The notes under the pieces: generated by a model
Databases searched by the model: none
Seen by the model: only the letters and a program-made list of their open reading frames with translations
What the model was told of the DNA's origin: nothing
Shown here: positions 329 through 64,000 of the stretch, piece by piece
How the letters are laid out: each line of letters begins with the position of its first letter
How positions within the stretch are numbered: position 1 is the first letter of the stretch
Position numbers and translations under genes: made by a program
Source: Callorhinchus milii
Lineage: Eukaryota
DNA length: 64,000 nucleotides
NCBI RefSeq assembly: GCF_018977255.1
Contig: NW_024704771.1
Span: forward strand, 3,472,001-3,536,000
Direction of reading: 5' to 3'

Positions 329-921
329 TCCCTTCAGAATCTTAAAAACCAAAATCGTATTGCCCCTCAACCTTCTCTTCTCCAATGTGAACATACCTAA
401 TCGCTCCTCATAGTCCAGTCACTCCATCCCTTGAATTATTCTGGTTGCCCTCCTCTGTATTCTCTCAATTGCTGCAATATCCGTTTTACAGCTGTCAATT
501 TGCACAAACCAGTGGTCTACAAACATCCATGAAGTCCATGACCATTTTTAGCTGAATGTTTGTTGGTCAGTAAACAGGGAAAAGCTACTATTTTTGAAAA
601 GTGCCTTGATTATAATAATATAATAATCCTTGTATTTCGTTTTGTGCGTTATCACGACATCGGGACATGTGGATTAAGGAAACTTGCCTAATAATAATAA
701 TAATCCTTGATATAGCGCCTTATCATATCTTTTAGATGTCTCAAAGTGCTTCACAGAACATACTGTAAAGTGAATTGGCTGTATATTTTGTGGGCTAAGG
801 TTTCGCCCCAACCCGGGTCCTCTCACTTGCGAGGCAAGCGTGCTAACCGCTACGCTAATACGACTCCACCATTTCTACACCTATTATAATCTAAAAGTAC
901 GTCGGATTAATTATTACTTAC

Positions 922-1029
922 TGAGCTTTCCAAAGAAGAGCGAGAAAAGTCCTGCGATACACAGATAGACCATCACCACAACAGTGCTTTTGAATGTTAC
1001 CTCAGCACCTGGAACATTACACTCGTTGA
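922..1029 (-). CDS. Gene A TM exon 4
   Basis: tccacag|..CTCA|GTAAGT, 108 nt; [36 protein letters not shown]. Confidence 0.85.
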
Positions 1030-4000
1030 CTGTGGACAGAATTATTATTGTCGGAATTAGACTCCAGAGATTTGTAGGTATTTACCTTGGGTTAAAGATA
1101 CAGAAATGGTGTTTCCAATGCATATCGTTTCATTTTAAATAATAAAATCAGGCAGATATCATTTTGAGTCGAGATCTGTCTGAAGGATTACTTTGTAATG
1201 GTCTTAATAATAATAATCCTTGAATTTGATACAGTGGCTTATCATGTTGTCGAGACATTTCAAAACACTTCACAGAATATACTGCAAAGTGTGGTGACTG
1301 TGTATTTTGAAGGCAAATGTAGCAGCCAACTGTGCACAACAGAGTCCAAAAACAGTCGTGGATTGAGTGACCAAATTAAAAATAAAATTTTGAAAAGCAT
1401 TTCAGAGCGCTTAACAATGGTGGAACCCACGGGGGCCACTGAAGTGGCTTTTTAGTCCCAAGAAACAGTATGGAGGACAGTGATGAGGATAATTCTCAGT
1501 ATTAATGGGATGATGGGAGGAAAATGCTTACCATTTTGTCTTGCTTCGTAAATTGGAATACACGAAACCCCAGCAGCCAAGAGTCCATACACAAGGAAAA
1601 TATTGCGATGCACTGTTCAGTGAATATAATTTGAATAAAGGAATAACAATTAGTATACCTGGGGGAATGCCTGTGAGGCATATAAACTGATGTTTTTGTC
1701 AATCTGTCAATCTATTCCTTATTTAATATAGTTTGTGGGACGCTGCTGTGCGCAATTGGCTGCCGCGTTTCGCCCACAAATATACGGTCAATTCACTTTA
1801 CAGCATATTCTGTGAAGCGCTTTGAGACTTCTAGAAGATGTGCAAAGCACTATATCAAATGCAAGGATTATTATTACTATTATAGTGCCTTATCACATCT
1901 TCGAGAAGTCTCAAAGTCTGTGTGCGAAACATGGAAAACAATTGCGCACACCCTAATCGTGGATGGAGTGACCAATTTTTTATTTAAATTCAATTAAAAT
2001 TCATTCCTCCATTTCTAACAACATTTTCCATATAGTGTGAATTTGTCGGCAAATGCGGCAGCCAATTTGTGAACAGTGAACCGGGAAAAACTCTCAGATC
2101 GATCAGAACTCGCCTCCACTGGCTCCCCATCCCCCAGAGGATAAAGTTCAAAATCCTTGTACTCACTTTCAAAGCCCCCCGTGGCCTTGCTCCTCCCTAT
2201 CTCTGTGACCTGCTAACTCCATGCCAAACTGTCCACTCCCTCCGCACACCTGCTTCACATCCCCTAATTCCAGAAAGCTTTGGGTGCAGGTAGGCAAGAG
2301 CCAAGGCTTGGCCACCCAAGAGTATGCGTTGAGGTAACTGCTGGAGTCTCACCAGCTAAAACTACATAGCTCGTCATTGATGGCGCCGTCTGGCAAGTTT
2401 TCCCACTGCTTGTCCAGCTAAGTGTGAGCCTGACTCTTGGTCTGAATCTGAGGCAATCAGGAGTCAGGATAATACCGGAATTATAAACCTCAAATATTGC
2501 AAAGTAAACTCACTGTTGTTTAACAAAAATGAGCTCGTCATTCTGGCTTCAGGATGCATGAAAAGCAGGACAGAATAAATCAGCATCACCACAACCATGA
2601 AACAACCAAATCCCGAGATAACTCTGTATTCTATTTTAAATCCTGAAAGAGGACAAATGAATAATGTGGTGAAATTGTGCAACATTAAGAATATAAGAAT
2701 TGTTGGCGAAAAAAGACCAAGGTCCATCCAGTTCGCCTTCCACCATCCTGGCAGGTATGACATGTCATGGCCCAAACTATATACTATATCCCAAGGTATT
2801 ATTTCCTAACAGAAATCTACCTAACACTTTGTTCTTGAACGCATCGACTTTCTGCTTCCACCATCTCCCTGGGAAGGCTATTATTATTTGCTCACCGAAG
2901 TAATGTTTCCAGTGATTTGTTCTGAATTTACTCCCCCCGCCCCGCCCTCAATTGCAGGCCATGGCCTCTGGTTCTACTGTCGGTATAAAACAGCATATCA
3001 TGGTCTACATTGTCCAGTCCCTTTACAATCTTAAAGACCATAACCATATCAACCTTCTCTTCTACCGCGAGAATATGCCCAGCTTACCTGATCGTTTCTC
3101 GTAGTCCAGTTCCTCAATCATTCTGGTTGCCCTCTCTGTATACACTGCAATAGTCTGATTATATAATACAAGACTACAGCCAATTATACCACTCAACCTT
3201 GCTTGTTGCATTTGTGACTAAAGTCAAATTGTTTTAAACCAGGAGACAGGTCATCAATTAAGTGATCTTTCAATGCAGTAATAACAACATTGATAATAAT
3301 CCTTGCATTTGATATAGGGCTTTATCATGTCTCCGAGATGTCTCAAAGCACTTCTATACTGTCAAAAGAATTGACTGCGTGTTTTGTGGACAAACGGGGC
3401 AGCCAATTAGGCACAGCAGTGTCCCGCAGTCATGGATTGAGTGACCAAATTATTATTTTTTGAAGGGATTATTAACCTCAGAAAGTGATCCACCTATCAA
3501 CTTCCAACCGGGTTCCTTACTGCTAGGTAAACAGAGGTGTGTGGAAACTTCCCTAAGGTTTCGGGCTGCCCAGGAATCGAACCCGAGTCCTCTCACCAAT
3601 ACGCTACAGGTCTCCATATGAATGCTCTTTTCAAGGCAGTAATAAAAGTTTCATTGCACCATCTCAACATGTAGAATTTTTGTCAACACCCATTTTTCTG
3701 TTTTCCATAAGATTACCCTCTAAACTACCACTGCAAATGTTACAGAATAGAACTCTGTAGCTTTGATATCTAGTCTGTTCCAATGATAAATAATAATAAT
3801 AATTTGGTCACTCAATCCACAACTGCTTGTGGGACACTGCTATGTGCCACTGGTTGCCTCATTTCGCCCACAAAGTATACAGTCAATTCCTTTTACAGTA
3901 TATTCTGTGAAGTGCTTTGAGACATCTCAACGAGTTAAGGCGCTGTATCACATGCAAAGATTATTGTTATTATTCGTGATAGCTCATGGACATGCGGAAT

Positions 4001-7000
4001 AAATGAGGAATCTATTTAGCAGAATAATTTGATGTAAAAGACTTTCTACATGTAGTTTGGCATTAGATAAGTATGATAGAAACAAGGTTGAGTTGTGAAT
4101 TTAAAACTCTTTAAAAACAAGGAACATACCTTCGGCTATCACGCAGAAAAGAGATGACATTAATAGGCTGATCATGGAGATTAGATGAAGGAGCATAAAA
4201 ATAGTAGTAAACTGCATGTGGCGTTTGTGAACTATGAATTCAAACAAACAAAATAAATCCTTTCGTAGCGATCTGAACTGACTATTAAATTCTTCCAATC
4301 AAATATGCAATGTATCTATGAACTTATAATGTAAGTGATCCAAAAATCATTTATATAAGCCTTGAATTTGATATAGTGCCTTGTCATGTTTTCGAGACAT
4401 CTCAAAGTGCTTCACAGAATATACTGTAAAGTGAATATTTTGAGGGCCAAATGTGGCAGCCAATTGCGCACAGCAGCAACCCACAAACAGTCGTGGATTG
4501 AGTGACCAAATTATTATTGCTTATTTTGTTTTTTTGTAGGGATTATTACCCCTGGGAAAAGCAATCCACCAATCTACTAACAACCGGGTTCCTCTTACTG
4601 CTGGGTAAACAGAGATGTGTGTAGTAAGTAAACTTGCCCAACGTTTTGCCCTGCCCAGGAATCAAACCAGGACCTCCCGCTTGCAAGGTGAGTGCTCTAA
4701 CCACTGAGCTACATGAACTATGAACTTGTAATGTAAGTGATTGAAAAAGCATTTATTACCTTGGAAATGTTTTAAGGCAAACAGCATTATGAAGAAATGT
4801 GCACCTAAGGTTGTGAGATTACTAACCAGTGAAAGGACACTGGCAGTAAGAGCATGTTGGTAAATAAACAGCGCATCTGAAACAAAGAATAATGTAAATT
4901 AAAACTCATTTTAAAATCTGACTGGCAAATGGAAAACTGTATTAGAACAACAGCGTATATAGCGCCCCTCAAGTAGGGAAGCATCCCATAGCGCTTGACA
5001 ATGGTGGAGCACAACGTCAAGCTGGGGGAGGTGACCTTAAACATGATCTTCAGGCGCGACCTGAAGGTGGGGAAGGAAGGGGCAAGGCGGAGTGATAGAG
5101 GGAAGAGTATTCCAGAATTTCGGGTGTAGCGGCTGAATGTGATCCGCCAATCAACTAACTGCTTACTGCTAAGTAAAGAGAGACAAGTGGAGTAGGGAAA
5201 CTTGTTCAAGATTGTTCCACCCGGGAATGGAACCCGGGTCCTCTCGCTTTCGAGGCAACCTCTGCATACTTTGCAGTATGTTCTGTGAAGCGCTTTGGGA
5301 CGTCCTCCCGACGTGAAAAGCGCTATATCAAATGCAAGGATTATTATTATTATTATAACCTCTCGAACCAATACTCTACAGGACTCCACCTGTAGAATGA
5401 CTTACACCTGGAAGCTTGTTGTTTAATCCGATGTGATTGCAATTTGCTGTAATGTGACTGGAATGAATTGATCCTTGACCGTTGCCAAATCAACAGATAA
5501 TAGTAATCCTTGCATTTGATATAGTGCCTTATCACATTTTCAAGACATCGCAAAGCACTTCACAGAATATGATGTGACGTGAATTGATTGTATGTTTTGG
5601 GGGTGAAATGCAGCAGCCAATTGAGCACAGCCATGTGCCACAAACATTGAATTCATTTTTTTTTTAAAAAAGGTATTATTACCCCCGGAAAGGTGATCCA
5701 CCAATCGACTAACAACTGGGTTCCTACTTACTGCTAGGTAAACAGAGCAGTGTGGAGTAAAGAAACATGCTCAATGTTTTGCCCTGCCTGGGAATCATAC
5801 TCAGGTATTCTCAGTTGCAAGGGGAATGATCTACGCACTATGCTATAGGATATATAAATCGGACAGTTACGAATCCTACCGTTGATAATGAGGAAATAGG
5901 AGTGGTTGTTCTGGCTAACGGCATTTTTGATATGGCATGTGTACCAGCCGCAGTCGGAGAATCTTACGTTATTCAGGATCAACGTGCTCTCACGCACTTC
6001 TTTACTGATTTTCACATTTTGCTTCGTCCACCAAATTTCATCTGCCGTTCCACTGTTCAGAATACAGCTCAGTGCAACCGTCTTAATGACGTAGGTGGGA
6101 TCTTGCAATATTATTGGTGTGGACAATATGTCTATGGAGGGGAAAAAATAAGTCAGATTGTCTGCAAAATCAGTGGACAGGAAACCCAATATGTAAAGCT
6201 TTTGCCTGTATTTAGCCTCAGTGTGGCTGAATGGTGGTTTGCCACAATTTTTGGGGTCAGCCAGGTGTCTGACATATATATGTATAACCTTGTTAAAAAG
6301 AACTTGACCATGGATTTCTGTACATAACGCAACTTGCATTTATATAGCACCCCTCATGCAGGGAAGCATCCCAGAGCACTTGACAGTGGTACAACCTGCT
6401 GCCCAGCTGTGCAGAGGGGGGAGGTGACCATAGGCACGGTCGAAAAGGAAGGTCTTCAGGTGAGACCTGAAGATGGGAAGGAAAGGGCAAGGTGGAAGGA
6501 TTGAGAAAGAGTGTTCCAGAGTTTTGGGGTCTAGTGGCTGAAAGTGCAGGCATTGATGGTGGAAAGGAGGGCATGAGGGACAAGTAGGAGGCTGGAGCCA
6601 GTCGATCGGATGCAATGGGTAGTGGATTGGGGAGCAAGCAGGTTGGAGAGGTAGGGAGATGCCAGGGCATGAAGGGATTTGAAGACGAGTGTCTTAAAGA
6701 TCTCTTGGTTCAAGTATTTTTCCAGTACACACACCATTGGAAATGACTGGAATCAAGAGATGTATAAGTTTCCAGACCAATCGTTAGCCCTCAGTGTGGC
6801 TGAATGGTGGTTTGCCACAATTGTTGGGGTCAGCCGGGTGTCTGACATATGCAGAAACCCATCACTGTTGCTTAAGAGTCTCCAAACCAAGCTGAGAGTT
6901 TTATGCATCCCACCTGCATATTGAAATCCCGGAGATAGATTGTTGGAATGGAGTGCATTCTCTCTCCCTGGAGGGAGGCATTCCGCTGCCCTAATTCTGG

Positions 7001-9594
7001 AAGGTATTAGGCGTAGCTCGGCAGGAGTCAGGACTTGGGGAGACCCCAGCGTGTGTGTTGTGATAACTGCTGGAGTGTACCCAGCTAAAACCGCATAGTT
7101 TGCCCTTGATAGTACTGTCGCTTGCCCTACGAGCCCAATAATCTATTTAGCCAGGTATTTTCTGTATTCATTCTCAAAGTTTAGGCGTTAGCTCTTATCT
7201 GACTAACACAGTCTGGAAACTTATGCATCTGGAAACAACACACACAATATATACGTATAAAAAATATTACATAGGGTGGAGGATTTCAAGATGCCAGCAC
7301 ACGATTGGGAAAAAAATGCTTAGAAATAAGGCACGGTCCATTACACCAGTAAGACTTACCTTCAACTTGCAGGTGTATATAGTGCAGGTGGGTAACCACG
7401 CTCTCTCCCGTTTCAGAAAGTCGGTGTTTACTCAACAAATAAATCCCAGAGTCTTTGATTTCTAAATGTTTTATTTGAAGAGATCCCAACTTTTGATCAA
7501 AATGTATTCGTAGTTTGTAATATGTATTGTAAGTATGATGGGCACTGACTGTATCGAAGCTCACAATTTGTATCATTCCATAGCGCGTGAGATAGTACCA
7601 ATCAAGTGTTTCCTCTTCAGTAATGATTGTTGTATCAATTCCAGGCAATAAAATGGAAGAATGCGTACTTGTAGCAAGGTAAAGTCGAGTTAATATTTCT
7701 GACTCACCTGAAATATTCACAAGAATTCATCAGTTAATTTTGCAACAAATAATAACTTGACAACTATATTATTTGGTGTGAAAATGAATTCAAAACCATA
7801 CACAATAACAACCTCGCATTTGATATAATTCCTTATCACGTCGTTGAGACGTCTCAAAGCGCTTCACAGGATATACTGTAAAGTGGATTGACCGTATTTT
7901 GAGGGTGGAACGCTAAATCTAAAATATGTAAATATAAAAAATATTACATAAGGTGGAGGATTTCACGATGCCCGCACATGACTGGGAAAAAATGCTTTAA
8001 CTTTAATATGCAATGCTAATGACGGAATGTTTCACAGAAAAAGGCGGTTCAGTCCATCAGGTTTACGCTGCCAATTCCCAACCCACAGAATCATCGAACT
8101 GTACGGCACAGGAAGCCATTCATGACTATTTGTGGGACACTGCTGTGCGCAATTTGGCCCAGAAAATGCACAGTCAATCCACTTTGCAGTATATTCCGCG
8201 AAGTGCTTTGAGATGTCTCAGCGATGTGATAAGGTGCTTTAGCAAATAATAATCAGAATCCTTGCATTTGATATAGTACCTTATCATGTTGGAGGGACAT
8301 TAAACGCAATATCCAAATTCACGCGAACCATTAATTGACCCAACGGTTACCATGAGTTGACTGTAACGCGTCACGGGACCTATTTTTGGCTTGAAGAACC
8401 GACGGTTTAAAAACAAATCTTCAAGGACTATATTCTTTCCTCCTTCAAGGCCGGGACTCGAGACCTTTCTCTTCGACCGTGCCGTCAGCTCCCCTCTCGA
8501 CTCTCTACCCCCTCCTCGCCCCCTCCCTCCCCTCACCCTGACCATCTCCCCCCTCCTCACTTCCTCCCTCCCCTCACCCTGACCGTCTCCCCCCTCCTCG
8601 CTCCATCCCTCCCCTCCCGCTGACCATCTCCCCCCTCCTCACTCCCTCCCTCCCGTCACCCTGACCATCTCCCCCCTCCTCGCTCCCTCCCTCGCCTCCC
8701 CCTGACCATCTCCCCCCTCCTCGCTCCCTCCCTCGCCTCCCCCTGACCATCTCCCCCCTCCTCGCTCCCTCCCTCCCGTCACCCTGACCATCTCCCCCCT
8801 CCTCGCTCCCTCCCTCCCCTCCCCCTGACCATCTCCCCTCTCGCTCCCTCCCTCCCCTCCCCCTGACCATCTCCCCCTCTCGCTCCCTCCCTCCCCTCCC
8901 CCTGACCATCTCCCCCTCTCGCTCCCTCCCTCCCCTCCCCCTGACCATCTCCCCCTCTCGCTCCCTCCCTCCCCTCCCCCTGACCATCTCCCCCTCCCTC
9001 CCTCCCCTCCCCCTGACCATTTCCCCCACTGATCCCGACCCAACTGTCCGGCGCCTCAGGACGTCCTCCCGACGTGAAAGGCGCTCTCTAAATGGAATCT
9101 TGTTGTTGCTGTTGTACTCTGGAATAGGTACCTAATGACCATAATAAACACAAAAATGGAGAGACACAAAAGAAATGCGAATGGGCTGTTCCCAAAGAGA
9201 GCTTCGCGGGTTACACCGCGACAGTGTACTTTGTGAGTGTTATCACAATAACCCGCTGCACAGTCAGTAACTCGGCCACTCAATCCACGGCTGTTTGCGG
9301 GGACGCCGCTGTGCTGCCGCGTTTCGCCCACAATGTAATGCAGTCGACGAATCCACTTTAAAATATACTCCGCAACAGACACCGAGACGTCCCGACGGCA
9401 AAACACATCTCTGTACGAAAACGGAAAGATTACGGTTATGGCAGTGAAGGAGGGGCGGCGCGTGGGCGACGCTTCACTCACTCACACACAGAGAGAGAGA
9501 GAGAGAGAAATAACACGCGGGTAAAGCAAGAGTTCGCCAATGTCCGCTTACCCTGAGGCGCCAGGAGGAGCAGGAGAGCGGCTGTGAGCAACAT
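922..9594 (-). CDS. Gene A (multi-exon): signal peptide-IgV(CD2/SLAM-like)-IgC2-multipass TM receptor; 3' end runs off the left edge of the window
   Basis: Seven GT-AG bounded exons joined by phase-1 introns (43+348+252+117+102+129+108 nt) splice into one stop-free frame of about 366 codons; every exon has a same-sized counterpart in genes B and C. Confidence 0.88.
2514..2642 (-). CDS. Gene A TM exon 3
   Basis: tttcag|..AACA|GTGAGT, 129 nt; [43 protein letters not shown]. Confidence 0.85.
4130..4231 (-). CDS. Gene A TM exon 2
   Basis: tcatag|..GAAG|GTATGT, 102 nt; [34 protein letters not shown]. Confidence 0.85.
4355..4715 (-). mobile_element. Same SINE, older long variant (dozens of other full or partial copies, e.g. 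690-870, 3290-3615, 19265-19580, 46620-46985, 56310-56650, 61050-61445)
   Basis: Retains the central ccaccaatc..gggttcc..tactgct.ggtaaacag segment. Confidence 0.8.
4760..4876 (-). CDS. Gene A TM exon 1
   Basis: tttcag|..CAAG|GTAATA, 117 nt; [39 protein letters not shown] (manual translation). Confidence 0.85.
5880..6131 (-). CDS. Gene A IgC2 exon
   Basis: ccatag| acceptor, AACG|GTAGG donor, 252 nt; LSC..IWW..TLIL..DCGWYTC..N.VS. Confidence 0.9.
7360..7707 (-). CDS. Gene A IgV exon (CD2/SLAM/CEACAM-N type, no B-F disulfide)
   Basis: ttcag| acceptor, GAAG|GTAAGT donor, 348 nt; SILLPG..LDWYY..RIHF..GSLQI..DSGIYLL..LQVE, with Leu at both canonical Cys positions. Confidence 0.9.
8520..9020. repeat. 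Pyrimidine-rich minisatellite of about 40-45 bp units (ccctgaccatctccccc..cgctccctccc) inside an L2-derived element
   Basis: About 12 imperfect tandem units seen directly. Confidence 0.9.
9552..9594 (-). CDS. Gene A exon 1, signal peptide [14 protein letters not shown](G)
   Basis: ATG at 9594, hydrophobic leader, donor CAG G|GTAAGC in phase 1. Confidence 0.85.
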
Positions 9595-10175
9595 TCCCGC
9601 TGCCTGACTCCAGGGCGAGGGACAAGTCACAAGATGGCGCCCAACGGCAACTCCGCCCTTTTAACGGCCACAGTTCAAAACGAAAGACAAACAAAGCGGC
9701 GACTGGCGCCGCTGTCCGGCTCTCTGGCCCCCGCCCGCCCCGCCCGCCCGGGGGCCGCTCGCTCGGTAACGCCGACTCCGCCCGTTCCGCCGCCTTCAGT
9801 TCGGCTCCGAAGCCGCTTCTCCTTCGCCTCTGACAACGGTGTCAGTTTGTCCGCCTCCCGTCCCCCCCCCGCTCACTCACTCACTGCGCAGGCGCCGACC
9901 TCCCGTCCCCCCGCGCTCACTCACTGCGCAGGCGCCGCATCGCCCGTCCCCACGCGCTCACTCACTCACTCACTGCGCAGGCGCCGCACCGCCCGTCCCC
10001 GCGCTCACTCACTGCGCAGGCGCTGCACCGCCCGTCCCCACGCGCTCACTCACTCACTGCGCAGGCGCCGCACCGCCCGTCCCCACGCGCTCACTCACTC
10101 ACTCACTGCGCAGGCGCCGCACCTCCCGTCCCCCCCCCCGCGCTCACTCACTCACTGCGCAGGCGCCGCACAGCC
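9595..10175 (-). promoter_or_regulatory. CpG-island promoter of gene A with YY1 motif, GC boxes and 7 NRF1-motif repeat units
   Basis: CAAGATGGCG at 9630-9639 (YY1 consensus); CCGCCC runs at 9730-9750; TGCGCAGGCGC x7 in 9885-10166. Confidence 0.75.
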
Positions 10176-17992: not shown

Positions 17993-18328
17993 CAAGAAGG
18001 GTGACATAATAATAATTTAATAATCCTTGCACATGAGATTGTGCCTTATCATGTCAGAAGGATGTCTCAAAGCACTTCACAGGAATTACTGTGATGTGGA
18101 GTGACCATATATTTGTAGGCAAATATGGCAGCACAATTGCGCACAGCAATGTCCCACAAACAGTCATGGATTGAGTGATCCAATTATTATTTCATCAGTG
18201 AAATAGAATAAGTATTTGAACAAAATTCGAACAAATATTAAGGCAGTGAAAAACATATTTTATATATAATGCCTGGTTCAGCTCATAACCAATGTGAAGA
18301 TATATATATCTGAATGATTATTACTTAC

Positions 18329-18436
18329 AGAATTTTCCTAATAAGAGTAAAATTATTCCAACAGCAACGAAATAGACCATCACTGCAATTGTGACTTTTA
18401 TTGACAGCTCACTATATGGGACGCTGCACAATGTCA
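18329..18436 (-). CDS. Gene B TM exon 4
   Basis: tccacag|..TTCT|GTAAGT, 108 nt; [36 protein letters not shown]. Confidence 0.85.
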
Positions 18437-21400
18437 CTGTGGATAGAAATATGAGAGCCTGAATTAATAGTGATAATCCTTGCATTTGAGACATCTCAAA
18501 ACGCTTCACAGAATATAGTGACATGCGATCTTTAAAGGCCACCACAGTGTAAGACAACACTTGTTTCACACCACAGTAAGAGTCAGCACTGACAAAATTC
18601 AGCACACATTTAATAATAACAATCTTTGCACTTGATATAAGAACATAATATAAGAATTTGCTAGGCAGAAAAAGACCAAAGTCCATCTTCTTCATCTTCC
18701 ACCAGTTTGTCTCAAAGCAGTTCACACAATGACGTGTTGTTGTGACTGTGTATTTTGTGGGAAAATCGCGTCAGCCAATTGCACACAGCAGTGTGTCACA
18801 AACAGTTGTGGATTGAGCGACCAAATAATTTTTTTTTTGGAAAGATCGACTAACAACAGGGTTCCTAATTACTGTTAGGTAAACAGAGGCATGTGAAGCA
18901 AGGAATCTTTCCTAAACTTTCAGCCCGCCCTGGAATTGGACCCGGGTCCTCTCCCTTGCGAGGTGAGTGCGCTAACCTGTATGCTACAGGAATATCAATC
19001 AAGGTACAAACCAAGCCCCTGAAATTTTAAATCATTTGAAATACAAACAGAAGTATAACTGATGATCACTTTCGACTTTTTTAACTTTATTTTGAAATAC
19101 TCACTGTTTGTATGCGCTGCATAAAGCGGGACACATGAAATCAATATAGCAAATATTCCATATCCAATAAAAATATTACGATGCTCTGCAAGGGAATAAA
19201 ATTTGAACAAAAAAATAGAGAAGTTTACTCGTGCACTCGAGTATAGGGTGACCAAAAAGATGTGATAATAATAATAATAATCCTTGCATTTGATGTAGCA
19301 CTTTTCATGTCTTCTAGACGTCTCAAAGAGCTTCACAGAATATACTGTAAAGTGAATTGACTGTATATTTGTGGGCAAAATGCAGCAGCCAAATTACGCA
19401 CAGCAAATCACAAAGAGTCATGGATTGAAGTGACCAATCTATTATTGTTTTTTTTCTTGAGGGATTATTATCAGGCGTGTGGAGTAAGGAAACTTGCCCA
19501 AGGTTTCGCCCTGCTGGGAATCGAACCCAGGCCTCTCGCTTGAGAGGAGAGTGCTCTAACCACTGAGCTACAGGACTCCACATACAATTACAATGTCTAC
19601 TAAGTCTTAAAGAAATGTTATCATCATAGAATCATATAGCACAGAAGGAGACCATTCGGTTCATTGTGTCTGTGCCAGAGGTGAAAAGAGGTGTCCAAAT
19701 CAATCCCATACCCCTACTCCCTCCCCATAGCCCTAAAAAGCTGACCACACACACACACATATTGGATAATAGGGAAGTTATGACTTTTTGGTCACATTGT
19801 AGTTACTCTGCTTCTATGATTCTGTCAACCATTCAGCATTTATTAATATGCATTTCGTTACCCACCCCACCTGGGATTCAAACCTGGGTCCTCTTGCTTG
19901 CAAGGTGAAATCGATAACCACAACATGACAGGACTCCTTAACCAGAATATACAGAGATAGTATTGTTTTAACTTACTTGACATAACTAAAAATGACACTG
20001 GTAGATCTTTCTTAGAATGCAGGAAACAGTAGGCAACGTAGCTAAACATTAGTAAAACCATGAGCATTGTGACTCCTGAGATAATCCTGTATTCCAAATG
20101 AAATCCTAAAAAGAAAGGGCAATGTGAAGATTGTGGTGAAATGGAAAGAATGCTAAACTGCAATCATCTGAAAATATACTACAAGATTCATACCTATGCT
20201 CATCAAAACAATTTATCTTAAAATATTAAATTGCTACAATTTCTAAGCATTTTACATGCACGATACATATATGGAGACACAGAAAATATATTTGAAAGGG
20301 ATTCCTTTGTGGGTGTAAAATCCATAGAATTTTGCAAAATTTCTGGAAATCTCCCTACTTCAGGTGAAATGCAGGGGGTGAACCTGGATTGAATCCTGTA
20401 ATTCCAGTTTTCATGTTTTACATGACTTCCACTACCAAATTATTTTGTTGATAACAAGTGCCCAGAATTTCAAGGAGGAAGATGAACAACGCAAGCCAGG
20501 GGTGGGATACTGGGCTTTGTAACAAATAATGTTAGATATAAAAGTAAGCGAATGCCACTGCTGGTAAATCAGAATTTGGTCAGACCTCAATTGGACTATA
20601 TTCAAGTTTGGACACTTAATTTTAGAAAGGATGTACTGTAATGAGAGAACTACTATTGCAAGCAATAGTAAAGACTATACAGCTACGTGAAGATTGAGAA
20701 TAATAATTATACAATAATCCTTGCATTTGATATAGCACCTTATCACGTCATTGAGACGTCTCAAAGCGCTTCACAGAATATACTGTAAAATGGATTAACT
20801 GTATATTTTGTGAGGAGTGAGGAAGGGGAGAGGAGTTAATGGAGACAAAGGTGGGTTAATGAATCGAAAGAACTTTCTTACAGAATCATAACATTTTACA
20901 GCATAGAAGGAGACCATTCGCCCACTGTGTCTGTGTAGGCTCTTTGAAAGAGCTATCCAACTAGTTCCACTAGCCCGCTCTTACCCCATAGTCCTGTAAT
21001 TCTTTTGTTTTGAAGTACATATCCAATTCCCATTTGAAAGCTATTATCAAATCTACTTCCACCACCCTTTCAGGCAGTGTTTTATCTTAACTGTACACCC
21101 CTTTGCCCTTCCCCCCAACTCCTGCCTACTAGACATGTGCAGGTGAAAAGGAGTTATTGCCTGCCTACAAAAGAATCATTCTTTCGTAAAATCTCATATG
21201 GTGTCTGATGATGATAGAAGTTTTGTGTTTTTCCTCAATTGTAAATAAATTGCCCATAGCCTTTGACATAACTTTCAAAAGAGAATTGGGCAAGTAATTA
21301 TGAAGGGAAAATGTGCAGGGCTGTGGGGTAAGAGTGGAACTAGTTGGACAGCTCTTTCAAAGAGCTGGCACAAGCACGATGGGCTGAATGGCCTCCTTCT

Positions 21401-24400
21401 GTGCCATTCTATGACACACTCTGAAAGGCAGAAAAGTAACAAGGCACAAGTTACAATTTTGTAGGAATCATAAATGTTGCTTGTGGGAACTATTGCTCAT
21501 CCATCAGTAGAGATGAAAGCATGGAGAAAAAATAATAATAATTTGATAGAGAGTGAGAAAGCACCTTATCACATTGAAATGGTTCAAAGCGCTTCACACA
21601 TGCACTGAGTACTAATGCTAGTGATCTTTTTGTTACCTGTTTATCACGGAGAATCCAGTATAAAACTAACTGGAACAAAAAGATAACTAAGGTTAGTAAT
21701 CAATGTGTAATAGATCCCAACGGGTTACATGGAAGTGTAGTAACTGTTGTTATTGGCAAAAGACCACAATATATATCAATAATTGCTTTTCCGGGGGTAA
21801 TAATCCCTTCTTTTTTTAAAAAAATTAATAATAATTTGGTCACTAAATCCATGACTGTTTGTGGGACAATGCTGTGTGCAATTAGCTGCCGCATTTCACC
21901 CACAAAATACACAAGTCAATTCACTTTACATTATATTCTGTGAAGCGTTTTGAGACGTCTCACTGACGTGATAGGGGGCTGTATCATATGCAAGGATGAT
22001 GATTATCATTATTAATAATAACTTACATGGGCCAGCAAAGTCCAACAAAGAGCAACAACAATTTTTTTTAAGGAGACTAGGATGAGAAAGGAATATATAG
22101 CTCATACTCAAGAAGAACGCTCTACTTTTTTGTTGGTCCGACGGGTGTCTGACACATGTGGAAGCCCAGAGATAGATTGGTGGAATAGAATGTGCACTCT
22201 CGCCCTGGAGGGTCACATCCTGCTTTTCTAAGTCTGGAAACTATTAGGCGCAGGTTGGCAAGAGGGGATCCCAGATTAATTAATCAACTTATATCAATAA
22301 CAATTAATTATTTCATATCAATGACAATTAACTTATCATATCAATAACAATTAATTAATTTATCACATCAATAATAATTAATTAACTTATATCAATACAC
22401 AATAGCCGGACTTGACGTATGATTATATTTAATAGTGCTGTAAGATTCTATGCGATCTTGAATATGGTTCATGCAGAGCTCAACTTTGTTTCTAGAGTGT
22501 CTGTGGATTGCTGAGTTTTGTATGCTTTTGCTTGACACAAATTGGTGATGAAAGGAAACAAGATGGTTTAACTTGGAATAAGTTAGATAAGTTTGAAATT
22601 CACATATCTATAAAACAATGCATCCAAACACATTCTGTGAAGTCGATCACTGCAAGATGTGCAAATCTTGAAATCAGATGCTGGCATTGATAGAAGTTGT
22701 TGATAATCTACCAGGAATGTATTCAAATAAACCAAGGACAGCAGCAGATTCAATGGGCATTATTCAACACCATACACTCTGGGAGCAAATTCATTATTGT
22801 GGGCGCATTCTGAGACGCTACCCCGTGTGAAGGGCGCTATATAAATGCAAGTTGTTGTTGTAAAACCCACCTCTGCTCTAGGTGGTAAGTTGCATAAATT
22901 TGTTCATATCCAGTTAGAAATAACTGTAACAGCAAATGGGATAATATACCTTTACAATGATAGCGAACTAGTAGTTAAATCACATAACTACTGTTTGTGA
23001 AACTTGCTTGAATGGCACAGAATAGTGTTTATTCCACAATGGCCGAATTTGTTCCCTGGAGGCGTGGAGAGGAATAATCACCAAAGAACTCATTTTGGAA
23101 AAGTAAAACAATTTCCGAAACTAGAATCAAATGTGCCTAAAACAGTCACTACACTTGACAGTAATTACCTGTGAAGCGCTTTGAGATGTTGTGACGTAAT
23201 AAGGCGTTATAAAAATGCAAGTTCTCTCTTTCTTCTAAATTTCGAATATTTCCGGTTGTATGGTTCAGCTACTCACTGGATAAACTCTCTGAGCCATCGG
23301 GGAGCTCTTAAGAAGACATGTTAATGTGAAAAGTGTAGAAGTTGATATAGACATGAACTACAGTGGCAGTAACTTTAGCCGGATGCTGATTAACCCTGGA
23401 CACCAGGTTGTATTCTCACCCGTTTTAAATATGCTGGTAATTTAGACAAAACATCCAGTTAATCCGAGCAAAATGCTGCGCTGGTCATTGCTACGTCAGC
23501 TTACTCGCCTCGACTGTCTCCGGGAGGGAGATGAGAGGAGTGAAATTGTGATTGACTGACAGCGGAACCAGCCATTTACAAGTGGCTTAAAGGTGTCAAT
23601 CGGTAGCGGAACAGGGAAGAAACAAGGGAGGAAATGGAAGGAGTCACATCGTTATTGATTGACAGTTGAATCGCTTGTGATTGAGTGGAGTGCCCATTCC
23701 AGGCTATCAATCATCTCGGAGCTGCCATGAATTGGTCCCCTTCCTGTCCAATGGGTGGGAGGAGCCGCTTGTCTGCTGGGCGGGAAGAAGTAATGGTACT
23801 TTGTTTAACCTCGGACGTGGCTTAAACCGGACAAAACGACCATCCCAATGTGTGTCCGGCTTAAGCTGCTTCCACTGTATATACATTAGCTAAACAGCAT
23901 GGAAAAATGACTTTTGTATTAAAATGCAACTTTAATACAAAGAAAGCTACACTTACCTTTGTCTAATATACCCAAAAGAGATCCAATCAACTGACAAGTC
24001 AGGGATAGCAATTGAAAGAGCACACAAATAGCACTGAGTTGCGCCTGATGCTTGGAAGCTACCAACACAACAAATGAAATGATTTCAACAGAATATCAGT
24101 GTATGAGGACGTCTGAATTTTTAATTTTTTTTAAAAAAAATTGCTTCAAATCTTTTAAATTGTCTATGAACTTGTAATGTAATGATCTTCACAAAAATGT
24201 ACCTTTAAATTTCTTCAAGGCATAGAAGATTATCAACAGTATTGAAGCAAAGGACATTACAGTACTAATCAGTGAAATGACAGCAGCCATCAGTGAATTT
24301 TGGTGAGCATACAGAATACCTAAAACAGAAAACTAACGTAAATTTTCTCTACTTTACGTAAATCATTCAGAATTCTGCGGCTTGTGACCTCTCCCTCACC

Positions 24401-27400
24401 ATACTCCATAAGCCTATCACACCCACATTCTTGCTCGGCTCCACTGGCTCCCTATCTCCCAGCGGCTCAAGTGCACTATCCTCTTTCATAGCTCTGTGAC
24501 TTTCTAAAACCGTATCAACCCGCCTGCTCCCTCCGCTTCATGGCCTGCTTCATGTTCGTCTCCTTGCCCCGCTCTGCCTTCCCCATCTGTCTCTTTGATT
24601 GTACACTTCTTTCGCCTCCTTCAAGGTCCATTTCAAAACCTTCCTCTTTGGCTGTGTCTTTGATAATAACAATAATAGCAATAATCCTTGCATTTGATAT
24701 AGCGCTTTTCACGTCGGGAGGATGTCCCAAAGCGCTTCACAGAACACAATGTAAAGTGAATTGACTGTATATTTGTGGGCGAACGCTGCAGCCAATTGCG
24801 CACAGCAATGTCCCACAAACAGTCGTAGATTGAAAATGACCAATTTATTATTGTTTTGTTTTGGAGGGATTATTATTAGGCTCTGTGTTGAGTAAGGAAA
24901 CTTGCCCAAGGTTTCACCCTGACCTGCCTGGAATTGAACTCCATCTCGCAAAGCGAGTGCTCTAACCACTGAGCTACAGGACTCCACATAGTCATCATCC
25001 CATATCCATCTCCCCTGGCCTCCACCCCTCCTGATCAGAACCACTGGCTGAGGGGCAAACACTAGATTGTCATGGCCTTGGGATGTCTTCCCAATGTGAA
25101 AGGTGGTATATAAATGCAATAAATGCAATTTTGTGGTTGCTGCTGTCCATTTGTGTATAAAGAAATTGGTGATTTAGAAAAACACGCAGTGGTGATACAG
25201 ACATAATGGGCCTCCAGTCCCTTCAGTGTAGAGAATGTTGGTGTCTCTAGCTTGCCCTTGTTTCTTCTGGTGATGGCACGATTTATGTATTTATCAGTGA
25301 AAATCTAAATTTAACCCGTCAAAATTAAGGAGCAATTTAATTTTTTTCTTCCCAAAACGGGCTAAATGACCCCTTCCTGGTCCTGTTTACCTATGTTCCT
25401 TTACTCGTTACAGTTCTCCAACTAGCTCCAAGATGACATGTTTGGCAACGGCATGTCAAAATTGAGCCAGCGTTCTGTGGCGGTCTCCAGTTTGGTTCCT
25501 GAGCCAAGCGGTCCACAGTACTTCAGGGCACTGCTGATTACAGCAGAGCCCAGCTCATCGGCGGGACCTGGAAGGACAGGGAATCTAACCACTCAGCTCC
25601 TGTTAATCCTGCAAGCTAAAGCGCTAACAGGTAGGGGTTCCTGGCTGAGCAAACATTGGGAAAGCTTGCCAGACAGTGATATCAGTGGTAAGCTGTGGAA
25701 TACTGCGGACTCGCCTGGCTCAGAAACTGGAATGCCGAGACCACCATAGAGAGCCGGCTTGATTCTTACATTCTGTTGCCAAACAAGTCACTCTGTAGCC
25801 AGTTCAGCTCCAAGGAGACACTGCTTACCTCCCCCCATACCCCAGGAACCCCAACCCTCTCAAGAAGGATATAATCTGACTATAGGAATTTCTCGGGAAC
25901 AAGGAAGTTTGAGTGACGTGATACCAGACTGAGCAGGAAATGAGTAGCATATCAGAAGTTCAGATTTACTTATACTAATCACAGCTGACAGTGAAATTAG
26001 ACAAGGCTAATTCACTTTACAGTAAATTCTGTGAAGCACTTTGAGATGGCTCAACGGCGAGATGAGGTGCCATATCAAATGCAAAGATTATTATTATCAT
26101 TAATAAACTAGAGCAGAAAACAATCTGTTTATTTGAGCAGACAGCGGGTGGGGGTGGGGGGGCAGCGGGGAGAAGTACAGGCTGTGTGGCATGCATTGGT
26201 ATAATGCCAGTGATCAGCAGTGACATATTTCTATTTGTATTGATTACGTATGAAGCTGAGCTTGGTTGCTTAGAGTGGGGCATATTAATGATAATCCTTG
26301 CATTTGACATATTGCCTTATCACATCATTGATATGTCTCAAAGCATTTCACAGACTATACTGTAAAGTAAGATGACTATATTTTGTGAGTGAAACATGGC
26401 AGTGAATCGCACACATCAGTGTCCCACAAACATTCATGGATTGAGTGGCTAAATTATTATTGTTATTTTACTGATTTATTTTTTGAAGGGATTATGACTC
26501 CCGGAAAATGATCTGCCAATCGACAAAACACCGGGTGCCTCCTTACTGCTGGGTGAACAGATGAACGCTGAAAGCATGCTACCATATTCTTAACAAATGA
26601 AAGCTCTATCTCTACCTATATGAATAAGAAATCAGACTGTTATCAAACCTACCATTGAGAATGAGGAAATATGAGCGGCTGTTCTGGCTGACATGGTTTT
26701 TGACCATGCATGTGTACCAACCACATTCCCCCAGTTTTGGGTTAGTAATAAGCAGCAAGCTCTTGTCAGATTCTTGACTTTGAAGCAAAGAAGTGTCGTT
26801 TTCAATTCCTCTAAACCAGTGTGTTTCATGGGGGATAGCCTCTTTCACAAGACAGGCTAACAAAACGCTAGTGATTACGTAGAGGGGATCTTGAACTACC
26901 AGTGGTACTGGCAATCTGTCTGTTAGAAAAAATGAAGTCACATACAGTTGGCATTATTTTGCAGGTGATCTGTAGACAGCATTGTGGTGACTAATCCTGT
27001 CACCTAACACCAGGAGGGAGTTAATATTATCAAAAAATTAACTTATTATTGACACCAAGTTGACACATCCAATCTAAGGTTAGCTGCTACTAAATTTTCT
27101 ACCTCAGTAATTCACAATTTATAATAATAATAATCTTTGCATTTGATACAGCATTGAGATGGCTCAAAGCGCTTCACAGAATATATTGTAAAATATAGTG
27201 TCTGTGTATTTTGTGGGCAAAATGCAGCAGCCAATTGGGCACAGCAATGTCTCACGAACAGTTGTGGATTCTTGACAACTTCCAGATTGTCTGAACAGTA
27301 TGGCGAGCACTGGTATTACTTTGCACTGCTGACTAATCACATAACTCAGATGCTTACTACTTATCACTTACTCAAATGACCAACTACATGCATCATGCCC

Positions 27401-30400
27401 ATTCATTAGTATAAGTTTCACGCATTAAATAATACTTATATCACCTTAGCACGCCAAAATCTCAAAGCTTTTCACAGTGAATTGCACTGAGGTATTAGTG
27501 ACAGTTATTATGTAGACAACACAGAGATGAAATATAATAGCAATCCTTGCATTTGATATAACATGTCATTGAAGCGTCCCAAAGTGCTTCACAGAGTATA
27601 CTGTAAAGTGGAGAGACTGTGTGTTTTGTGGGTGAAATGTGGCAAACAGTTGCACATAGCAACATTCAACAAACAGTCGTGGATTGAGTTTTTTTGAGGG
27701 ATTATTACCCCCGAATAGTGATCCGCCAATTGATTAATAACCGGGTTCCTATTTTCTTGCAAGGTGAGTGCTCTAACCACTATGCGACAGGACTCCATAC
27801 CATAATAAAATGTGCAGAATAATGCTGTAATGTTTGAGACGTGAAACACATAGAGCCATAGAAGTATACAGCCCAGAAGGAGGCCATTTGGCCCATCGTG
27901 TCTGTGTGGCTCTTTGAAAAAAGATATCCAAATCAATCCCAGTCCCGTGCTCTCTCTCTCCCCATTGTCCTCCCCAAATAATTATCTACTTCTCTCTTAA
28001 AAGTTGTTACCGAATTGGCTTCCACCACCCTTTTAGGCAATGCATTCCAGATCCAAACAATTCGCTGTGTAAAAAAATCTCCTCACCTCCCCTCTGTTTC
28101 TTTTAACAACTATTTTAAATCAGCGTCCTCGGGTTCACCCATCCACCAGTGGAAATAGTTTCTCCTTGTTCAGCCTATCGAATCCCTCATAAGTTTAAAA
28201 ACTTCTATCAAGTCTCCTCTTAACCTTCTCTGCTCCAAGGAGAATAACCCAAGCTTCTCCAGCCTCTCCTGATAACTGAAGTCCCTCATTCCTGATATCA
28301 TCCCGGTAAATCTCCTTTGGACCCTGTCTAATGCCTTGACATCCTTCCTAAAGCGTGGTGCCCAAAACTGATGACCGTACTCTAGTCAACCAGCAGCGCT
28401 TTCTTCCACCCCCACCACATTGCTCGTCTCCGACAATACCTCACCCAAAAAGCTGCCAAAACCCTTGTCCATGGGCTTTGTCACCTCTCGGCTGGACTAT
28501 CTCCAATGCCCTCCTTGCCAGTCTCCCCTCCTCCACCATTCACAAAATCCAGCTCACTCAAAACTCCGACTCCCACATTCTCACCTGCACCAAACTTTGT
28601 ACTCCGATTACTCCAGTCCTTGCCAAACTTCGCTGGCTCCCTGTCATACAGTGGATCGACTACAAGATCCTCACTCTGGTGGTGTTCAAATCCCTCCATT
28701 CCTTGGCATCCCCCTAACTCTCTAACCTCCTCTCTCCCCACAGCAATACCCACTGACTTCACTCTACTGGGTCCGGCCTCCTCTGAACCCTCTGCTCCAC
28801 CATAGGCAGCCATACCTTCAGCCACTATGTCCCAAAACTTTGGAACTCCCTCCTTCAACCTATTTGCCTCGCTCCCTCCTTCCCCATCTTCAGGTCACTC
28901 CTGAAGACCTTTTCTGTAGGATCACCTTCCCCCTCCCCCTGGCTCGGCCACTGTGAAGCTCCGAGACGCCGCCCGGCGGGGAGGGTGCTATATAAGTGCA
29001 AGTTGTTGTTGTAACTGAGGCCTATCCAGTGTTTTATAAAGTTTCATCATAACCTCCTGATTTTTGTTTTCTCTGCCCCTATTTATAAAGCCTACTATCC
29101 CACATGCTTTTTAACAACTTTATCTGCCTGTCCTACCACCTTCAAACATTTACTTATATGAACCCCCAGGTCTCTCTGTTCCTTCACCCCCTTTAAGATT
29201 GTACCATCAGCTTATATTGCCTCTCCTCGTTCTTCCTCCAAAAATGCATCACTTCGCATTTCTCCACATTAAACTTCATCTGCCACCTGTCTGCCCATTT
29301 TACCAGTCAGTCTATGTCCATTTGTAGTCTGCTACTATGCTCCTCACTGTTTACTACTTTTCCTGGCTTAGTATCATCTGCAAACTTGGAAATTGTACTC
29401 CCTATACTCAAGTCCAAGTCATCTGTATTCATCAAAAACAGCAGTGGTCCCAATACTGACCCCGCGGGGACAATACTGCACACTTCCCTCCAGTCAGGAA
29501 AACCTTCACCACCATTCTCTGCCCTCTGTCTCCCAGTCTGTTCTGTGTCCATGCTACCACTATTTCTTTAATACCGTGGGCTTCTATTTTGCTTACAAGT
29601 CTTTTATGTGGCACTTTATCAAATGCCTTTTGAAAATCCATATAAACTACATCAACTGCACTACCTTCATCCACCCTCTCCGTTATTTCATCAAAAAACT
29701 TAAGACATGATTTCCCTTTAACAAACCCATGCTGGCTGTCATTTAATTAACCCATATTTTTCGAAGTGAAAGTTTATTTTAACTTGGATTATAGTCTCTA
29801 CAAGTTTCCCCATGTTAGGATGAGTGGCCTGTAGTACCCACATTTATCCTTCTGCCGTTTTTGAACAGGGGAGTAACATTTGCAACCTTCCAGTCCTCTG
29901 GCACCACCCTGGTGTCCAAGAAGGATTGACATGCCACCTCTTTTTGTGGGGAAAACATTTCTAATGCTTAGAGATAAACATAATCAAGCATTGTAATCAA
30001 CTTGGTGGAAATAAACCAGTGTTCTCCACTGCTCTTTAGATTGAACATTGCACATCACACCAGTAGCACACTTACCTTCAACTATCAACTTCATGTAGGA
30101 TTCATATTGATGTGTAGATTGGGCCTGAGATTTGTCTAGTACTGACCGTTCCAATATTCTAAGATAAAAGCCACTGTCACTTTTTTCTAAGTCCATCAGT
30201 CGAAGAGATCCATCAGTTACATTAAAAAATATTCGGTGTCTGTAATAGTGATTGACAGAAGATCTACCTTTCATAATGTGAAATCCCCCAACAGTTACTT
30301 CAGCTTCGCGGTATAAAAACTTCCATTCGATTGATTCATTAAGTGTCAAATATCCAGGACTGAACCCAGGGAGTAAAACCGAGGTGTGTGCAGCACGGTA

Positions 30401-39400: not shown

Positions 39401-40078
39401 CTGACCTATGAGGAGAGGCTGAATAAACTGGGGCTGTGTTCTCCAGAGTACAGAAGAATTAGGGGAGATCTTAAGATTCTTAAAGGGCTGATAAAGTAGA
39501 CACTGAGGGTCTGTTTCCCCCGGAAGGGGAATCTATAACCAGGGGTCACAGTCTGAAAATTAAGGGTCAGCCTTTTAGAACAGAGTTGAGGAAACATTTC
39601 TTCACTCAGAGGGTAGTGAACTTATGGAATTCACTCCCCCAGAAGGCTGTAGATGCTCAGTCCTTGAACATCTTCAAGGCTGAGACTGACAGATTTTTAA
39701 AAAACAGAGGGATTGGGGGATATGGGGATACGGCGGGTAATTAGAGTTAGGTCAGAAGATCAGCCATGAGCTTATCGGATGGCGGGGAAGGCTCGAGGGG
39801 CCGAATGGCCAACTCCTGCTCCTAACTCTTATGTTCTTGCTATCGATATCATTCATATTCCCGCTGTTTGTCCAGTCAGGACCACCCGACCCTTCAGGGC
39901 TTTGGCTGCCCGGTTAATAGGAGCTGAGTGGGAAGGTGACCAATGTACAGCAGTTGAACCCCTCTAAACACACACACACACACTCAGAGAGAAATAACAC
40001 GCGGGTAAAGCAAGAGTTCGCCAGTGTCCGCTTACCCTGAGGCGCCAGGAGGAGCAGGAGAGCGGCTGTGAGCAACAT
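18329..40078 (-). CDS. Gene B (multi-exon): signal peptide-IgV(CD200-like)-IgV(CD2/SLAM-like)-IgC2-multipass TM receptor
   Basis: Eight exons joined by phase-1 introns (43+333+354+267+117+102+129+108 nt) give one open frame. Confidence 0.85.
19977..20105 (-). CDS. Gene B TM exon 3
   Basis: ttttag|..TCAA|GTAAGT, 129 nt; [43 protein letters not shown]. Confidence 0.85.
23361..23877. mobile_element. Non-autonomous Tc1/mariner-type DNA transposon (MITE), 517 bp
   Basis: TA|CAGTGGCAGTAACTTTAGCCGGA ... TCCGGCTTAAGCTGCTTCCACTG|TA: imperfect TIRs of about 23-26 bp with a TA target duplication; no ORF. Confidence 0.8.
23957..24058 (-). CDS. Gene B TM exon 2
   Basis: tggtag|..AAAG|GTAAGT, 102 nt; [34 protein letters not shown]. 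Confidence 0.82.
24203..24319 (-). CDS. Gene B TM exon 1
   Basis: ttttag|..AAAG|GTACAT, 117 nt; [39 protein letters not shown]. Confidence 0.85.
24682..24988 (-). mobile_element. Same SINE, full-length young copy
   Basis: Nearly identical to 63598-63922. Confidence 0.85.
26653..26919 (-). CDS. Gene B IgC2 exon
   Basis: taacag|..AATG|GTAGGT, 267 nt; LAC..HWF..ECGWYTC..N.VS. Confidence 0.9.
27850..29935 (-). mobile_element. CR1 LINE fragment interrupted by an L2 insertion (28385-28995)
   Basis: Minus-strand ORFs with [14 protein letters not shown] and SKFADDTK; CR1 sequence resumes on both sides of the L2 piece. Confidence 0.85.
28385..28995 (+). mobile_element. L2 LINE 3' fragment
   Basis: [24 protein letters not shown]; ctatataagtgcaagttgttgttg tail. 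Confidence 0.8.
30076..30429 (-). CDS. Gene B IgV exon (CD2/SLAM-like)
   Basis: tttcag|..GAAG|GTAAGT, 354 nt; SVLLPG..IEWKF..RIFF..GSLRL..DSGFY..LIVE. Confidence 0.9.
30745..34503 (+). mobile_element. Near full-length degenerate CR1 LINE with nested L2-derived insertions
   Basis: ORF1-like N-terminus, esterase region, RT motifs at 32997-33484, ttctataattcta tail. Confidence 0.9.
35303..35635 (-). CDS. Gene B extra IgV exon, CD200/nectin-like with canonical disulfide
   Basis: caccag|..ACAG|GTATCA, 333 nt, phase 1-1; [32 protein letters not shown]. Confidence 0.8.
38325..39838 (+). mobile_element. CR1 LINE RT and 3' end
   Basis: ORF 38409-39041 with [35 protein letters not shown]. Confidence 0.9.
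40036..40078 (-). CDS. Gene B exon 1, signal peptide (identical to A and C)
   Basis: 43 nt, ATG at 40078, donor G|GTAAGC. Confidence 0.85.
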
Positions 40079-45865: not shown

Positions 45866-45973
45866 TGATCTTTGCAAAAAAGAGAAGGAATATTCCAAAG
45901 GTAGAAATATAGATTATGATTGCAAACGCATTTTGCATTGCTAACTCAGTGCTTAGAATATTGCAATCTAGAA
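45866..45973 (-). CDS. Gene C TM exon 4
   Basis: tccacag|..ATCA|GTAAGT, 108 nt; [36 protein letters not shown]. Confidence 0.85.
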
Positions 45974-57555: not shown

Positions 57556-57593
<38 letters not shown>

Positions 57594-60371: not shown

Positions 60372-60513
60372 NNNNNNNNNNNNNNNNNNNNNNNNNNNNN
60401 NNNNNNNNNNNNNNNNNNNNNNNNNNNNNNNNNNNNNNNNNNNNNNNNNNNNNNNNNNNNNNNNNNNNNNNNNNNNNNNNNNNNNNNNNNNNNNNNNNNN
60501 NNNNNNNNNNNNN
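60372..60513. other. Assembly gap (142 N)
   Basis: Run of n. Confidence 1.
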
Positions 60514-63922: not shown

Positions 63923-64000
63923 AATTTTGGGATATTCTCCTGACATGAGAAGCACTGTGTAAATGTTATCTATTGTTGTTGGATGACTCTTAAAGAGCAA

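Follow-up and report, generated by a model that had tools for sequence, protein, structure and literature searches.

CD47 has been described as the immune system's only five-transmembrane (5-TM) receptor, and its fold as unlike that of any other protein (PMC8410850). In its crystal structure, a disulfide linking C15 to C245 (C33-C263) connects the immunoglobulin (Ig) domain to the second extracellular loop (ECL2), and this bond and the SWF linker form the anchor points of the ectodomain (PMC8410850); when the bond is lost, SIRP-alpha binding and signalling are impaired (PMC8410850, PMC10902115). A V-C2 ectodomain is known from the HEPACAM, CEACAM, and CD2-SLAM proteins, which are single-pass or glycosylphosphatidylinositol (GPI)-anchored. 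Here we describe a 64,000-nt stretch of the genome of the chimaera Callorhinchus milii (NCBI RefSeq assembly GCF_018977255.1, contig NW_024704771.1, positions 3,472,001 to 3,536,000 of the forward strand), hereafter called the window, whose minus strand carries three complete tandem paralogous genes (A, B, and C) together with the last exon of a further one, D. The encoded proteins combine a V-C2 ectodomain with five transmembrane (TM) helices, and in the family sequences complete through the last helix two cysteines beyond the canonical Ig pair are invariant, one in the C2 domain and one in the loop between helices 4 and 5. The best reading of this cysteine pair, to which we assign a probability of roughly 0.6, is an intramolecular disulfide bond from the C2 domain to ECL2 (C191-C361 in gene A).

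The genes were recognized by six-frame reading and by tblastn searches with the exon peptides of gene A, in vertebrate DNA with abundant short interspersed element (SINE)-like repeats. Coordinates refer to the window, and all of its features given below lie on the minus strand. Gene A (positions 914-9594) encodes a product of 395 residues, gene B (18321-40078) one of 402 residues, or of 513 residues with an optional exon, Vx, and gene C (45858-59535) one of 394 residues; gene D is represented by its last exon, T5 (62628-62743), the remainder being located beyond the window, and a search of positions 62744-64000 for its exon T4 yielded no credible exon. Exon boundaries of genes A to C were set from the flanking sequence; in the assembled models every acceptor is AG, every donor is GT, and every intron is of phase 1, and the open reading frames are intact with one terminal stop. 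The three genes have a common layout, comprising a leader exon (exon 1), a V exon, a C2 exon, and five short one-helix exons, T1 to T5. Exon 1 of gene A (9552-9594) contains the start codon, the signal peptide, and a phase-1 donor and is identical to that of genes B (40036-40078) and C (59493-59535). The V exons (7360-7707 in A, 30076-30429 in B, and 55824-56168 in C) encode CD2/CEACAM/HEPACAM-like domains that lack the canonical Cys pair. The C2 exons are located at 5880-6131 in A, 26653-26919 in B, and 52965-53219 in C; the gene A exon, defined by its splice sites, encodes a domain of the I-set/Ig_3 type (Pfam Ig_3, expectation value [E] 1.7e-10). Outside the leader, the three proteins share just 34 to 42% identity.

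The sequence-only reading had proposed a 5-TM topology in which only four helices were unambiguous and a marginal fifth helix, described for gene B, placed the loop cysteine outside. Five helices and an N-out/C-in orientation are retained here, whereas the marginal helix is an artefact: the string in question arises only if exon T3 is spliced straight to T5, a splice that we reproduced. The real fourth helix is encoded by an 81-nt phase-1 exon with AG and GT sites, T4, that had been overlooked in A (1532-1612), B (19105-19185), and C (46441-46521). T4 encodes the pattern HRNIF..YG......[IV]P[IL]Y, for which the highest hydropathy over 17 residues is 1.8 to 2.3 in the three genes, the helix of gene C being less hydrophobic; it is conserved among the paralogues (tblastn, E of 5e-8 and 3e-6) and corresponds to an annotated exon in the orthologue from the skate Leucoraja. 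Each gene encodes five clear helices, one per exon; in gene A the remaining ones are provided by T1 (4760-4876, with KHFQ following the helix), T2 (4130-4231), T3 (2514-2642), and T5 (914-1029), the last of which also comprises the loop cysteine, the tail KLSK, and the stop codon.

As the signal peptide and the two Ig domains position the N-terminus outside, five helices leave the TM1-TM2 and TM3-TM4 loops and the tail in the cytoplasm. The basic residues on which the earlier topology had drawn are indeed present after TM1 (KHFQ/KKFK/KKYK), after TM3 (HSKK in B), and after the last helix (GKLSK/GKFCK/AKISK/GRLGK). The number of lysines and arginines per gene in A, B, and C amounts to 3 to 4 in the TM1-TM2 loop, 2 to 4 in the TM3-TM4 loop, and 2 in the tail, with hardly any acidic residues in these segments; the TM2-TM3 and TM4-TM5 loops are net neutral to acidic. 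This distribution supports a predicted N-out/C-in topology that satisfies the positive-inside rule, and such a topology places the T5 cysteine in the extracellular TM4-TM5 loop, i.e., ECL2, as the sequence-only reading had it. The basic C-terminal tail of the family comprises 4 to 5 residues. AlphaFold2 (AF2) predictions for the skate orthologue display five helices whether the full-length protein or the TM part alone was modelled, and in the TM-only model (predicted local distance difference test [pLDDT], 70.9) the loop cysteine is the first residue after helix 4.

Codons were located for the third cysteine that had been noticed in the [D/E]-C-G-x-Y-x-C motif of all three C2 exons and for the cysteine ahead of the final helix, which is found in all four T5 exons, 11 to 12 residues before the helix. 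In gene A, the C2 domain possesses the canonical pair C153/C196 and the extra C191 (TGC, 5950-5952) in the E-F turn, and the ECL2 cysteine is C361 (TGT, 1019-1021; NEC-NVP). The corresponding residues are C198 (26723-26725, GECGWYTC) and, in exon T5 (18321-18436), C368 (18426-18428, TLC-SVP) in gene B, and C191 (53035-53037, SDCGLYMC) and, in exon T5 (45858-45973), C360 (45963-45965, LDC-NIL) in gene C; in gene D, the ECL2 cysteine is encoded at 62733-62735 (VKC-NIP). The C2 domain is a genuine Ig domain: Ig_3, I-set, and ig score above the Pfam cut-offs for A and C, and ig alone does so for B (24.4 versus 21.8), and the C, W, and Y-x-C of the domain, i.e., the canonical B- and F-strand cysteines and the C-strand tryptophan, are invariant in the family alignment.

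The sample available for assessing conservation comprised about 10 family sequences from 6 species; exon fragments were used in alignments only where they were placed correctly, since with a single full-length row the TM exons were stacked together. Across the five sequences complete through TM5, which show 30 to 45% pairwise identity, 39 of approximately 395 positions are invariant, and four of these are cysteines, two of them forming the canonical Ig pair and the other two being the extra cysteines. Cysteine occurs in 15 columns of this alignment, of which exactly these 4 are invariant and the other 11 vary, and within ECL2 the cysteine is the sole invariant residue. The extra C2 cysteine is present in 9/9 C2 domains of the main family (A, B, C, P0104, Pristiophorus, Heterodontus, two from Leucoraja, and Heptranchias), and the ECL2 cysteine in all six sequences that include the exon and also in P0162, a divergent Heterodontus protein. 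In elasmobranch sequences, S-C-T, T-C-Q, or N-C-E stands at the turn; as the canonical Asp and Gly have been replaced there while the Cys was kept, selection acts on the cysteine and not on the DxG turn. Judged from these alignments, retention of the pair appears to be more than chance.

Within the ectodomain, the E-F-turn cysteine has no partner, since in A, B, and C the V domain has no cysteine at all and the C2 domain no fourth one. DSSP analysis of the AF2 model locates Cys198 of the skate protein between strands E (residues 187-191) and F (201-206). The strands of a C2 domain alternate in direction, and the E-F turn therefore shares its end of the domain with the C-terminus of strand G. 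With helix 1 following within a few residues of the C2 domain, this geometry positions the E-F turn on the membrane side, and both cysteines are expected just above the outer membrane face. Further cysteines near this face are located at the end of TM2 (...LFC...) in 8/9 members, the exception being gene B (exon T2, 23957-24058, as determined by a phase-aware exon scan), at the start of TM3 in A and C only, and in an 'SC[IV]P' motif at the end of TM4 in A and B only, this last one being absent from C and from all elasmobranch sequences. The 'SC[IV]P' cysteines are encoded at 1560-1562 (C348 of A) and 19133-19135 (C355 of B); gene C and the elasmobranchs have Ala or Ser at this position.

From this arrangement we infer a bond between the C2 domain and ECL2. 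The C2 domain would sit almost directly on helix 1, and the solvent-exposed E-F-turn cysteine at its membrane-proximal end (C191 in A) would form a disulfide with the invariant cysteine of the TM4-TM5 loop (C361 in A), thereby locking the orientation of the ectodomain on the helix bundle, which is the role shown for C15-C245 (C33-C263) in CD47. This reading is preferred because both cysteines are invariant across chimaera, skate, and sharks, because the C2 cysteine has no partner within its domain, and because the E-F turn is at the end of the domain from which its C-terminus emerges. Several points weigh against it. The full-length AF2 model of the skate protein is poor (pLDDT, 59.8; predicted template modeling score [pTM], 0.35) and unfit for judging domain packing or the Cys-Cys distance; the cysteines at the TM2 end, the TM3 start, and the 'SC[IV]P' motif at the TM4 end represent alternative partners, and the number of outer-face cysteines is not always even. 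Each of the two C2 copies of the divergent Heterodontus protein has an extra A-strand cysteine in addition to the DCG cysteine, and the latter may pair within the domain there. Finally, membrane-proximal cysteines are also typical sites of interchain disulfides.

The last point leads to the alternative that survives best, although we consider it unlikely, namely, that the cysteines form interchain disulfides (C2 to C2' and/or loop to loop', or crossed C2 to loop') and thus covalent homo- or heterodimers among the paralogues, for which the membrane-proximal cysteines of CD28, CD8, and the T-cell receptor chains serve as a model. Both cysteines adjoin the membrane, where interchain bonds are usually located, and a tandem multigene array with identical leaders makes co-expression of paralogues possible; however, each chain has exactly two invariant exposed cysteines, positioned where the C2 base and ECL2 face each other, for which a single intrachain bond is the simpler solution, and CD47, the sole comparable architecture, has an intrachain bond. 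Distinctly improbable is a pairing of the ECL2 cysteine with a cysteine of the membrane domain, either that at the TM2 end near ECL1 or the 'SC[IV]P' cysteine of A and B, which would leave the C2 cysteine free, redox-active, or bound to another protein. The retention of the TM2-end cysteine in 8/9 members speaks for such a pairing, as does the position of the A and B cysteines directly before [IV]-P at the end of TM4, the same local context (Cys-Ile-Pro) as C245-I246-P247 in CD47, yet gene B keeps both invariant cysteines without a TM2-end cysteine, the 'SC[IV]P' cysteine is missing from C and every elasmobranch sequence, the alternative cysteines lie within hydrophobic helices, and a conserved free cysteine on an exposed Ig loop would be unusual. 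Least probable of all is that there is no disulfide and that packing, metal binding, or the like preserved each cysteine independently, or that the conservation is a small-sample effect, for although about 10 sequences from 6 species are few and include none without either cysteine, the neighbouring loop residues vary and the Asp and Gly are replaced while the cysteines persist in all six species, from chimaera to sharks and skate, and unpaired exposed extracellular cysteines are generally selected against.

The proposed intramolecular C2-to-ECL2 bond also invites comparison with CD47. As in CD47 and the poxvirus protein OPG166/A38, an Ig ectodomain stands directly on a five-helix domain with the N-terminus outside; the cytoplasmic tail is short (4 residues in CD47 isoform 1, 4 to 5 in the family described here), and an invariant cysteine in the TM4-TM5 loop coexists with a spare cysteine in the adjoining Ig domain, at its membrane-proximal end. 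There are also differences. The cartilaginous-fish family has two Ig domains, a CD2/CEACAM-like V domain without Cys pair followed by a C2 domain, whereas CD47 has a single IgV domain; the Ig-side cysteine resides in the E-F turn of C2 rather than in the N-terminal part of the IgV domain, as does C15 of CD47; the loop cysteine follows the 'IP' motif by 13 residues, whereas that of CD47 is next to the motif; and the genes form a tandem multigene family known so far only from cartilaginous fish, whereas CD47 is a single-copy gene. The designation 'CD47-like' given by the sequence-only reading is therefore appropriate for the architecture and the proposed mechanism but not for family membership, as the searches gave no Pfam match to CD47 and no CD47 among the fold matches listed, and the cysteine on the Ig side is located elsewhere.

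Specifically, when the P0153 and P0151 TM regions were run against Pfam with hmmscan, no family emerged at E<=10, and thus neither PF04549 nor PF08204. Likewise, no match to V-set_CD47 was obtained, the domain preceding helix 1 being of the C2/I-set type (Ig_3, I-set) and not a single CD47 IgV domain, and CD47 was not retrieved at E<=10 when a profile of five family TM regions was compared with the PDB sequences. Using the skate TM model, CD47 was not among the matches listed by Foldseek (PDB and Swiss-Prot AFDB) and VIA-align, this model being moderately confident and helical bundles being hard for aligners. The PDB profile search produced a match suggesting TARP/claudin-like homology of the TM domain, which was rejected as not significant (E of 0.2). 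In a comparison of protein-language-model features, the CD47 and OPG166 clusters were the top named neighbours for the TM part of three members, with scores of 0.65 to 0.70, below the level treated as more than a lead; the other neighbours were Ig proteins, which suggests that whole-protein context leaks into the TM comparison. Two small motif echoes are the family's [S/A]-x-[IVT]-P-[IL]-Y where TM4 ends (in A and B with Cys before [IV]-P) versus C245-I246-P247 of CD47, and a conserved Tyr in ECL1 plus G-x-G at the top of TM3 versus Y184 and 191-GLG-193. The family thus shares the Ig-on-5-TM architecture and fails the tests of CD47 membership that were run, and the likeness is architectural only. 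It is conceivable, if rather doubtful, that the five-helix domain is a true, very distant homologue of the CD47 5-TM fold, with helix order and ECL2 tether in common and the C-I-P and G-x-G motifs surviving as remnants; in that case an ancient, once diverse Ig-on-5-TM class would have left CD47 as its only survivor in bony vertebrates, and the Ig-ECL2 tether would be ancestral and would have shifted between neighbouring loops at the bottom of the Ig domain.

The likeness to the HEPACAM, CEACAM, and CD2-SLAM proteins is confined to the ectodomain. Beyond family members, teleost HEPACAM alone was matched (E of about 1e-7, 31% identity), in the ectodomain only, and the best Foldseek matches of the full-length skate model, CEACAM1, CD166, CD48, CD2, and CD58, again involved Ig ectodomains only. 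In contrast to the family described here, HEPACAM, CEACAM, and CD2-SLAM proteins possess neither the E-F-turn cysteine, the position of which is occupied by Asp in HEPACAM, nor a five-helix domain: here, V-C2 is followed by five helices and a tail of 4 to 5 residues, and not by one TM segment or GPI anchor and a long tail.

The family is sparsely represented in protein collections and has so far been seen only in cartilaginous fish. P0104, a UniRef entry from C. milii, has an identical leader peptide and a C2 domain with 49% identity, and runs on into the intron after the C2 exon. Word-indexed searches with P0104, or with P0104 and the C2 exons, returned almost nothing; these searches were length-limited and did not recover the products of genes A to C. 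Giant multi-Ig proteins dominated a C2-profile search of 1.84 billion representatives, in which only P0081 and P0104 were useful matches; the Heterodontus protein that the search retrieved is named 'CEACAM1-like' by NCBI. Further members are P0151 from Pristiophorus, P0152 and P0155 from Heterodontus, P0153 from Leucoraja (full length), and P0154 from Heptranchias (partial); exons T4 and T5 were sought at the Heptranchias locus and were not found within the 10-kb flank. The Leucoraja locus displays an identical eight-exon layout with one helix per exon. A second Leucoraja member, comprising V and C2 exons (L001:2417-2686 and 5585-5884, minus strand) with SDCGSYIC in C2, is situated head-to-head upstream, which indicates that the family is clustered in the skate, too. 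P0162 from Heterodontus combines V-C2-C2 with a multipass domain that is 26% identical through T1 to T3 and has a Cys before the last helix. Together with P0081 and P0163, also annotated as CEACAM1-like in Heterodontus francisci, it makes up a divergent subfamily whose members have two C2 domains that are nearly identical, each with the DCG cysteine and an extra A-strand cysteine, as well as a long cytoplasmic tail and an amphipathic segment inserted between helices 2 and 3. In P0152 and P0155 from H. francisci, the annotated splice joins the TM4 exon to a tail segment, leaving out the TM5 exon, which would give a four-helix protein with the tail outside; P0155 also omits most of C2 including the DCG cysteine. 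These omissions represent either mis-annotation or genuine exon skipping. Current annotations of the family genes are truncated, skip helix exons, or have misleading names, and literature searches found no paper on V-C2-five-helix proteins of this kind.

Several additional features of the locus were observed. Approximately 350 bp of promoter and 5' untranslated region, together with exon 1, are near base-for-base identical in A, B, and C (9552-9900, 40036-40400, and 59493-59860), and the similarity stops about 45 bases (alignment columns) inside intron 1, which looks like gene conversion or homogenization restricted to this region. A run of 142 N is located at 60372-60513, about 0.8 kb upstream of exon 1 of gene C, and a single N at 62389. 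The Vx exon of gene B (35303-35635, phase 1 at both ends), situated between exon 1 and the regular V exon, encodes a domain (Pfam V-set, 2e-8) that has the canonical Cys pair and an F-G region like that of PVR/PVRIG/CD200; its inclusion would yield a three-Ig isoform of 513 residues, and neither A nor C has a counterpart. The stop codon TAA of all four genes lies inside a perfect donor-like GTAAGTAA (914-922, 18321-18329, 45858-45866, and 62628-62636), so that, e.g., in gene A it overlaps a GTAAGT site, and relatives from Pristiophorus and Heterodontus have an additional basic tail segment (SW.xVRRLSR...) after or in place of TM5. Taken together, the donor-like site and these segments make alternative tails, as in CD47, possible; a tail exon of the elasmobranch type (SW.xVRRLSR) was sought downstream of T5 in the window, and none was found.

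What the analysis adds to the sequence-only reading is the T4 exon, the loss of Asp and Gly around the retained cysteine in elasmobranchs, and the negative searches for the CD47 fold. Exon T4 and the full gene models correct existing annotations of the family genes. A second, multigene Ig-on-5-TM family with an invariant spare cysteine pair represents a natural comparison for CD47. If the disulfide is real, attaching an Ig domain covalently to a bundle of helices would be a recurrent or ancient design, and the family would offer a direct route to asking about the origin of CD47.

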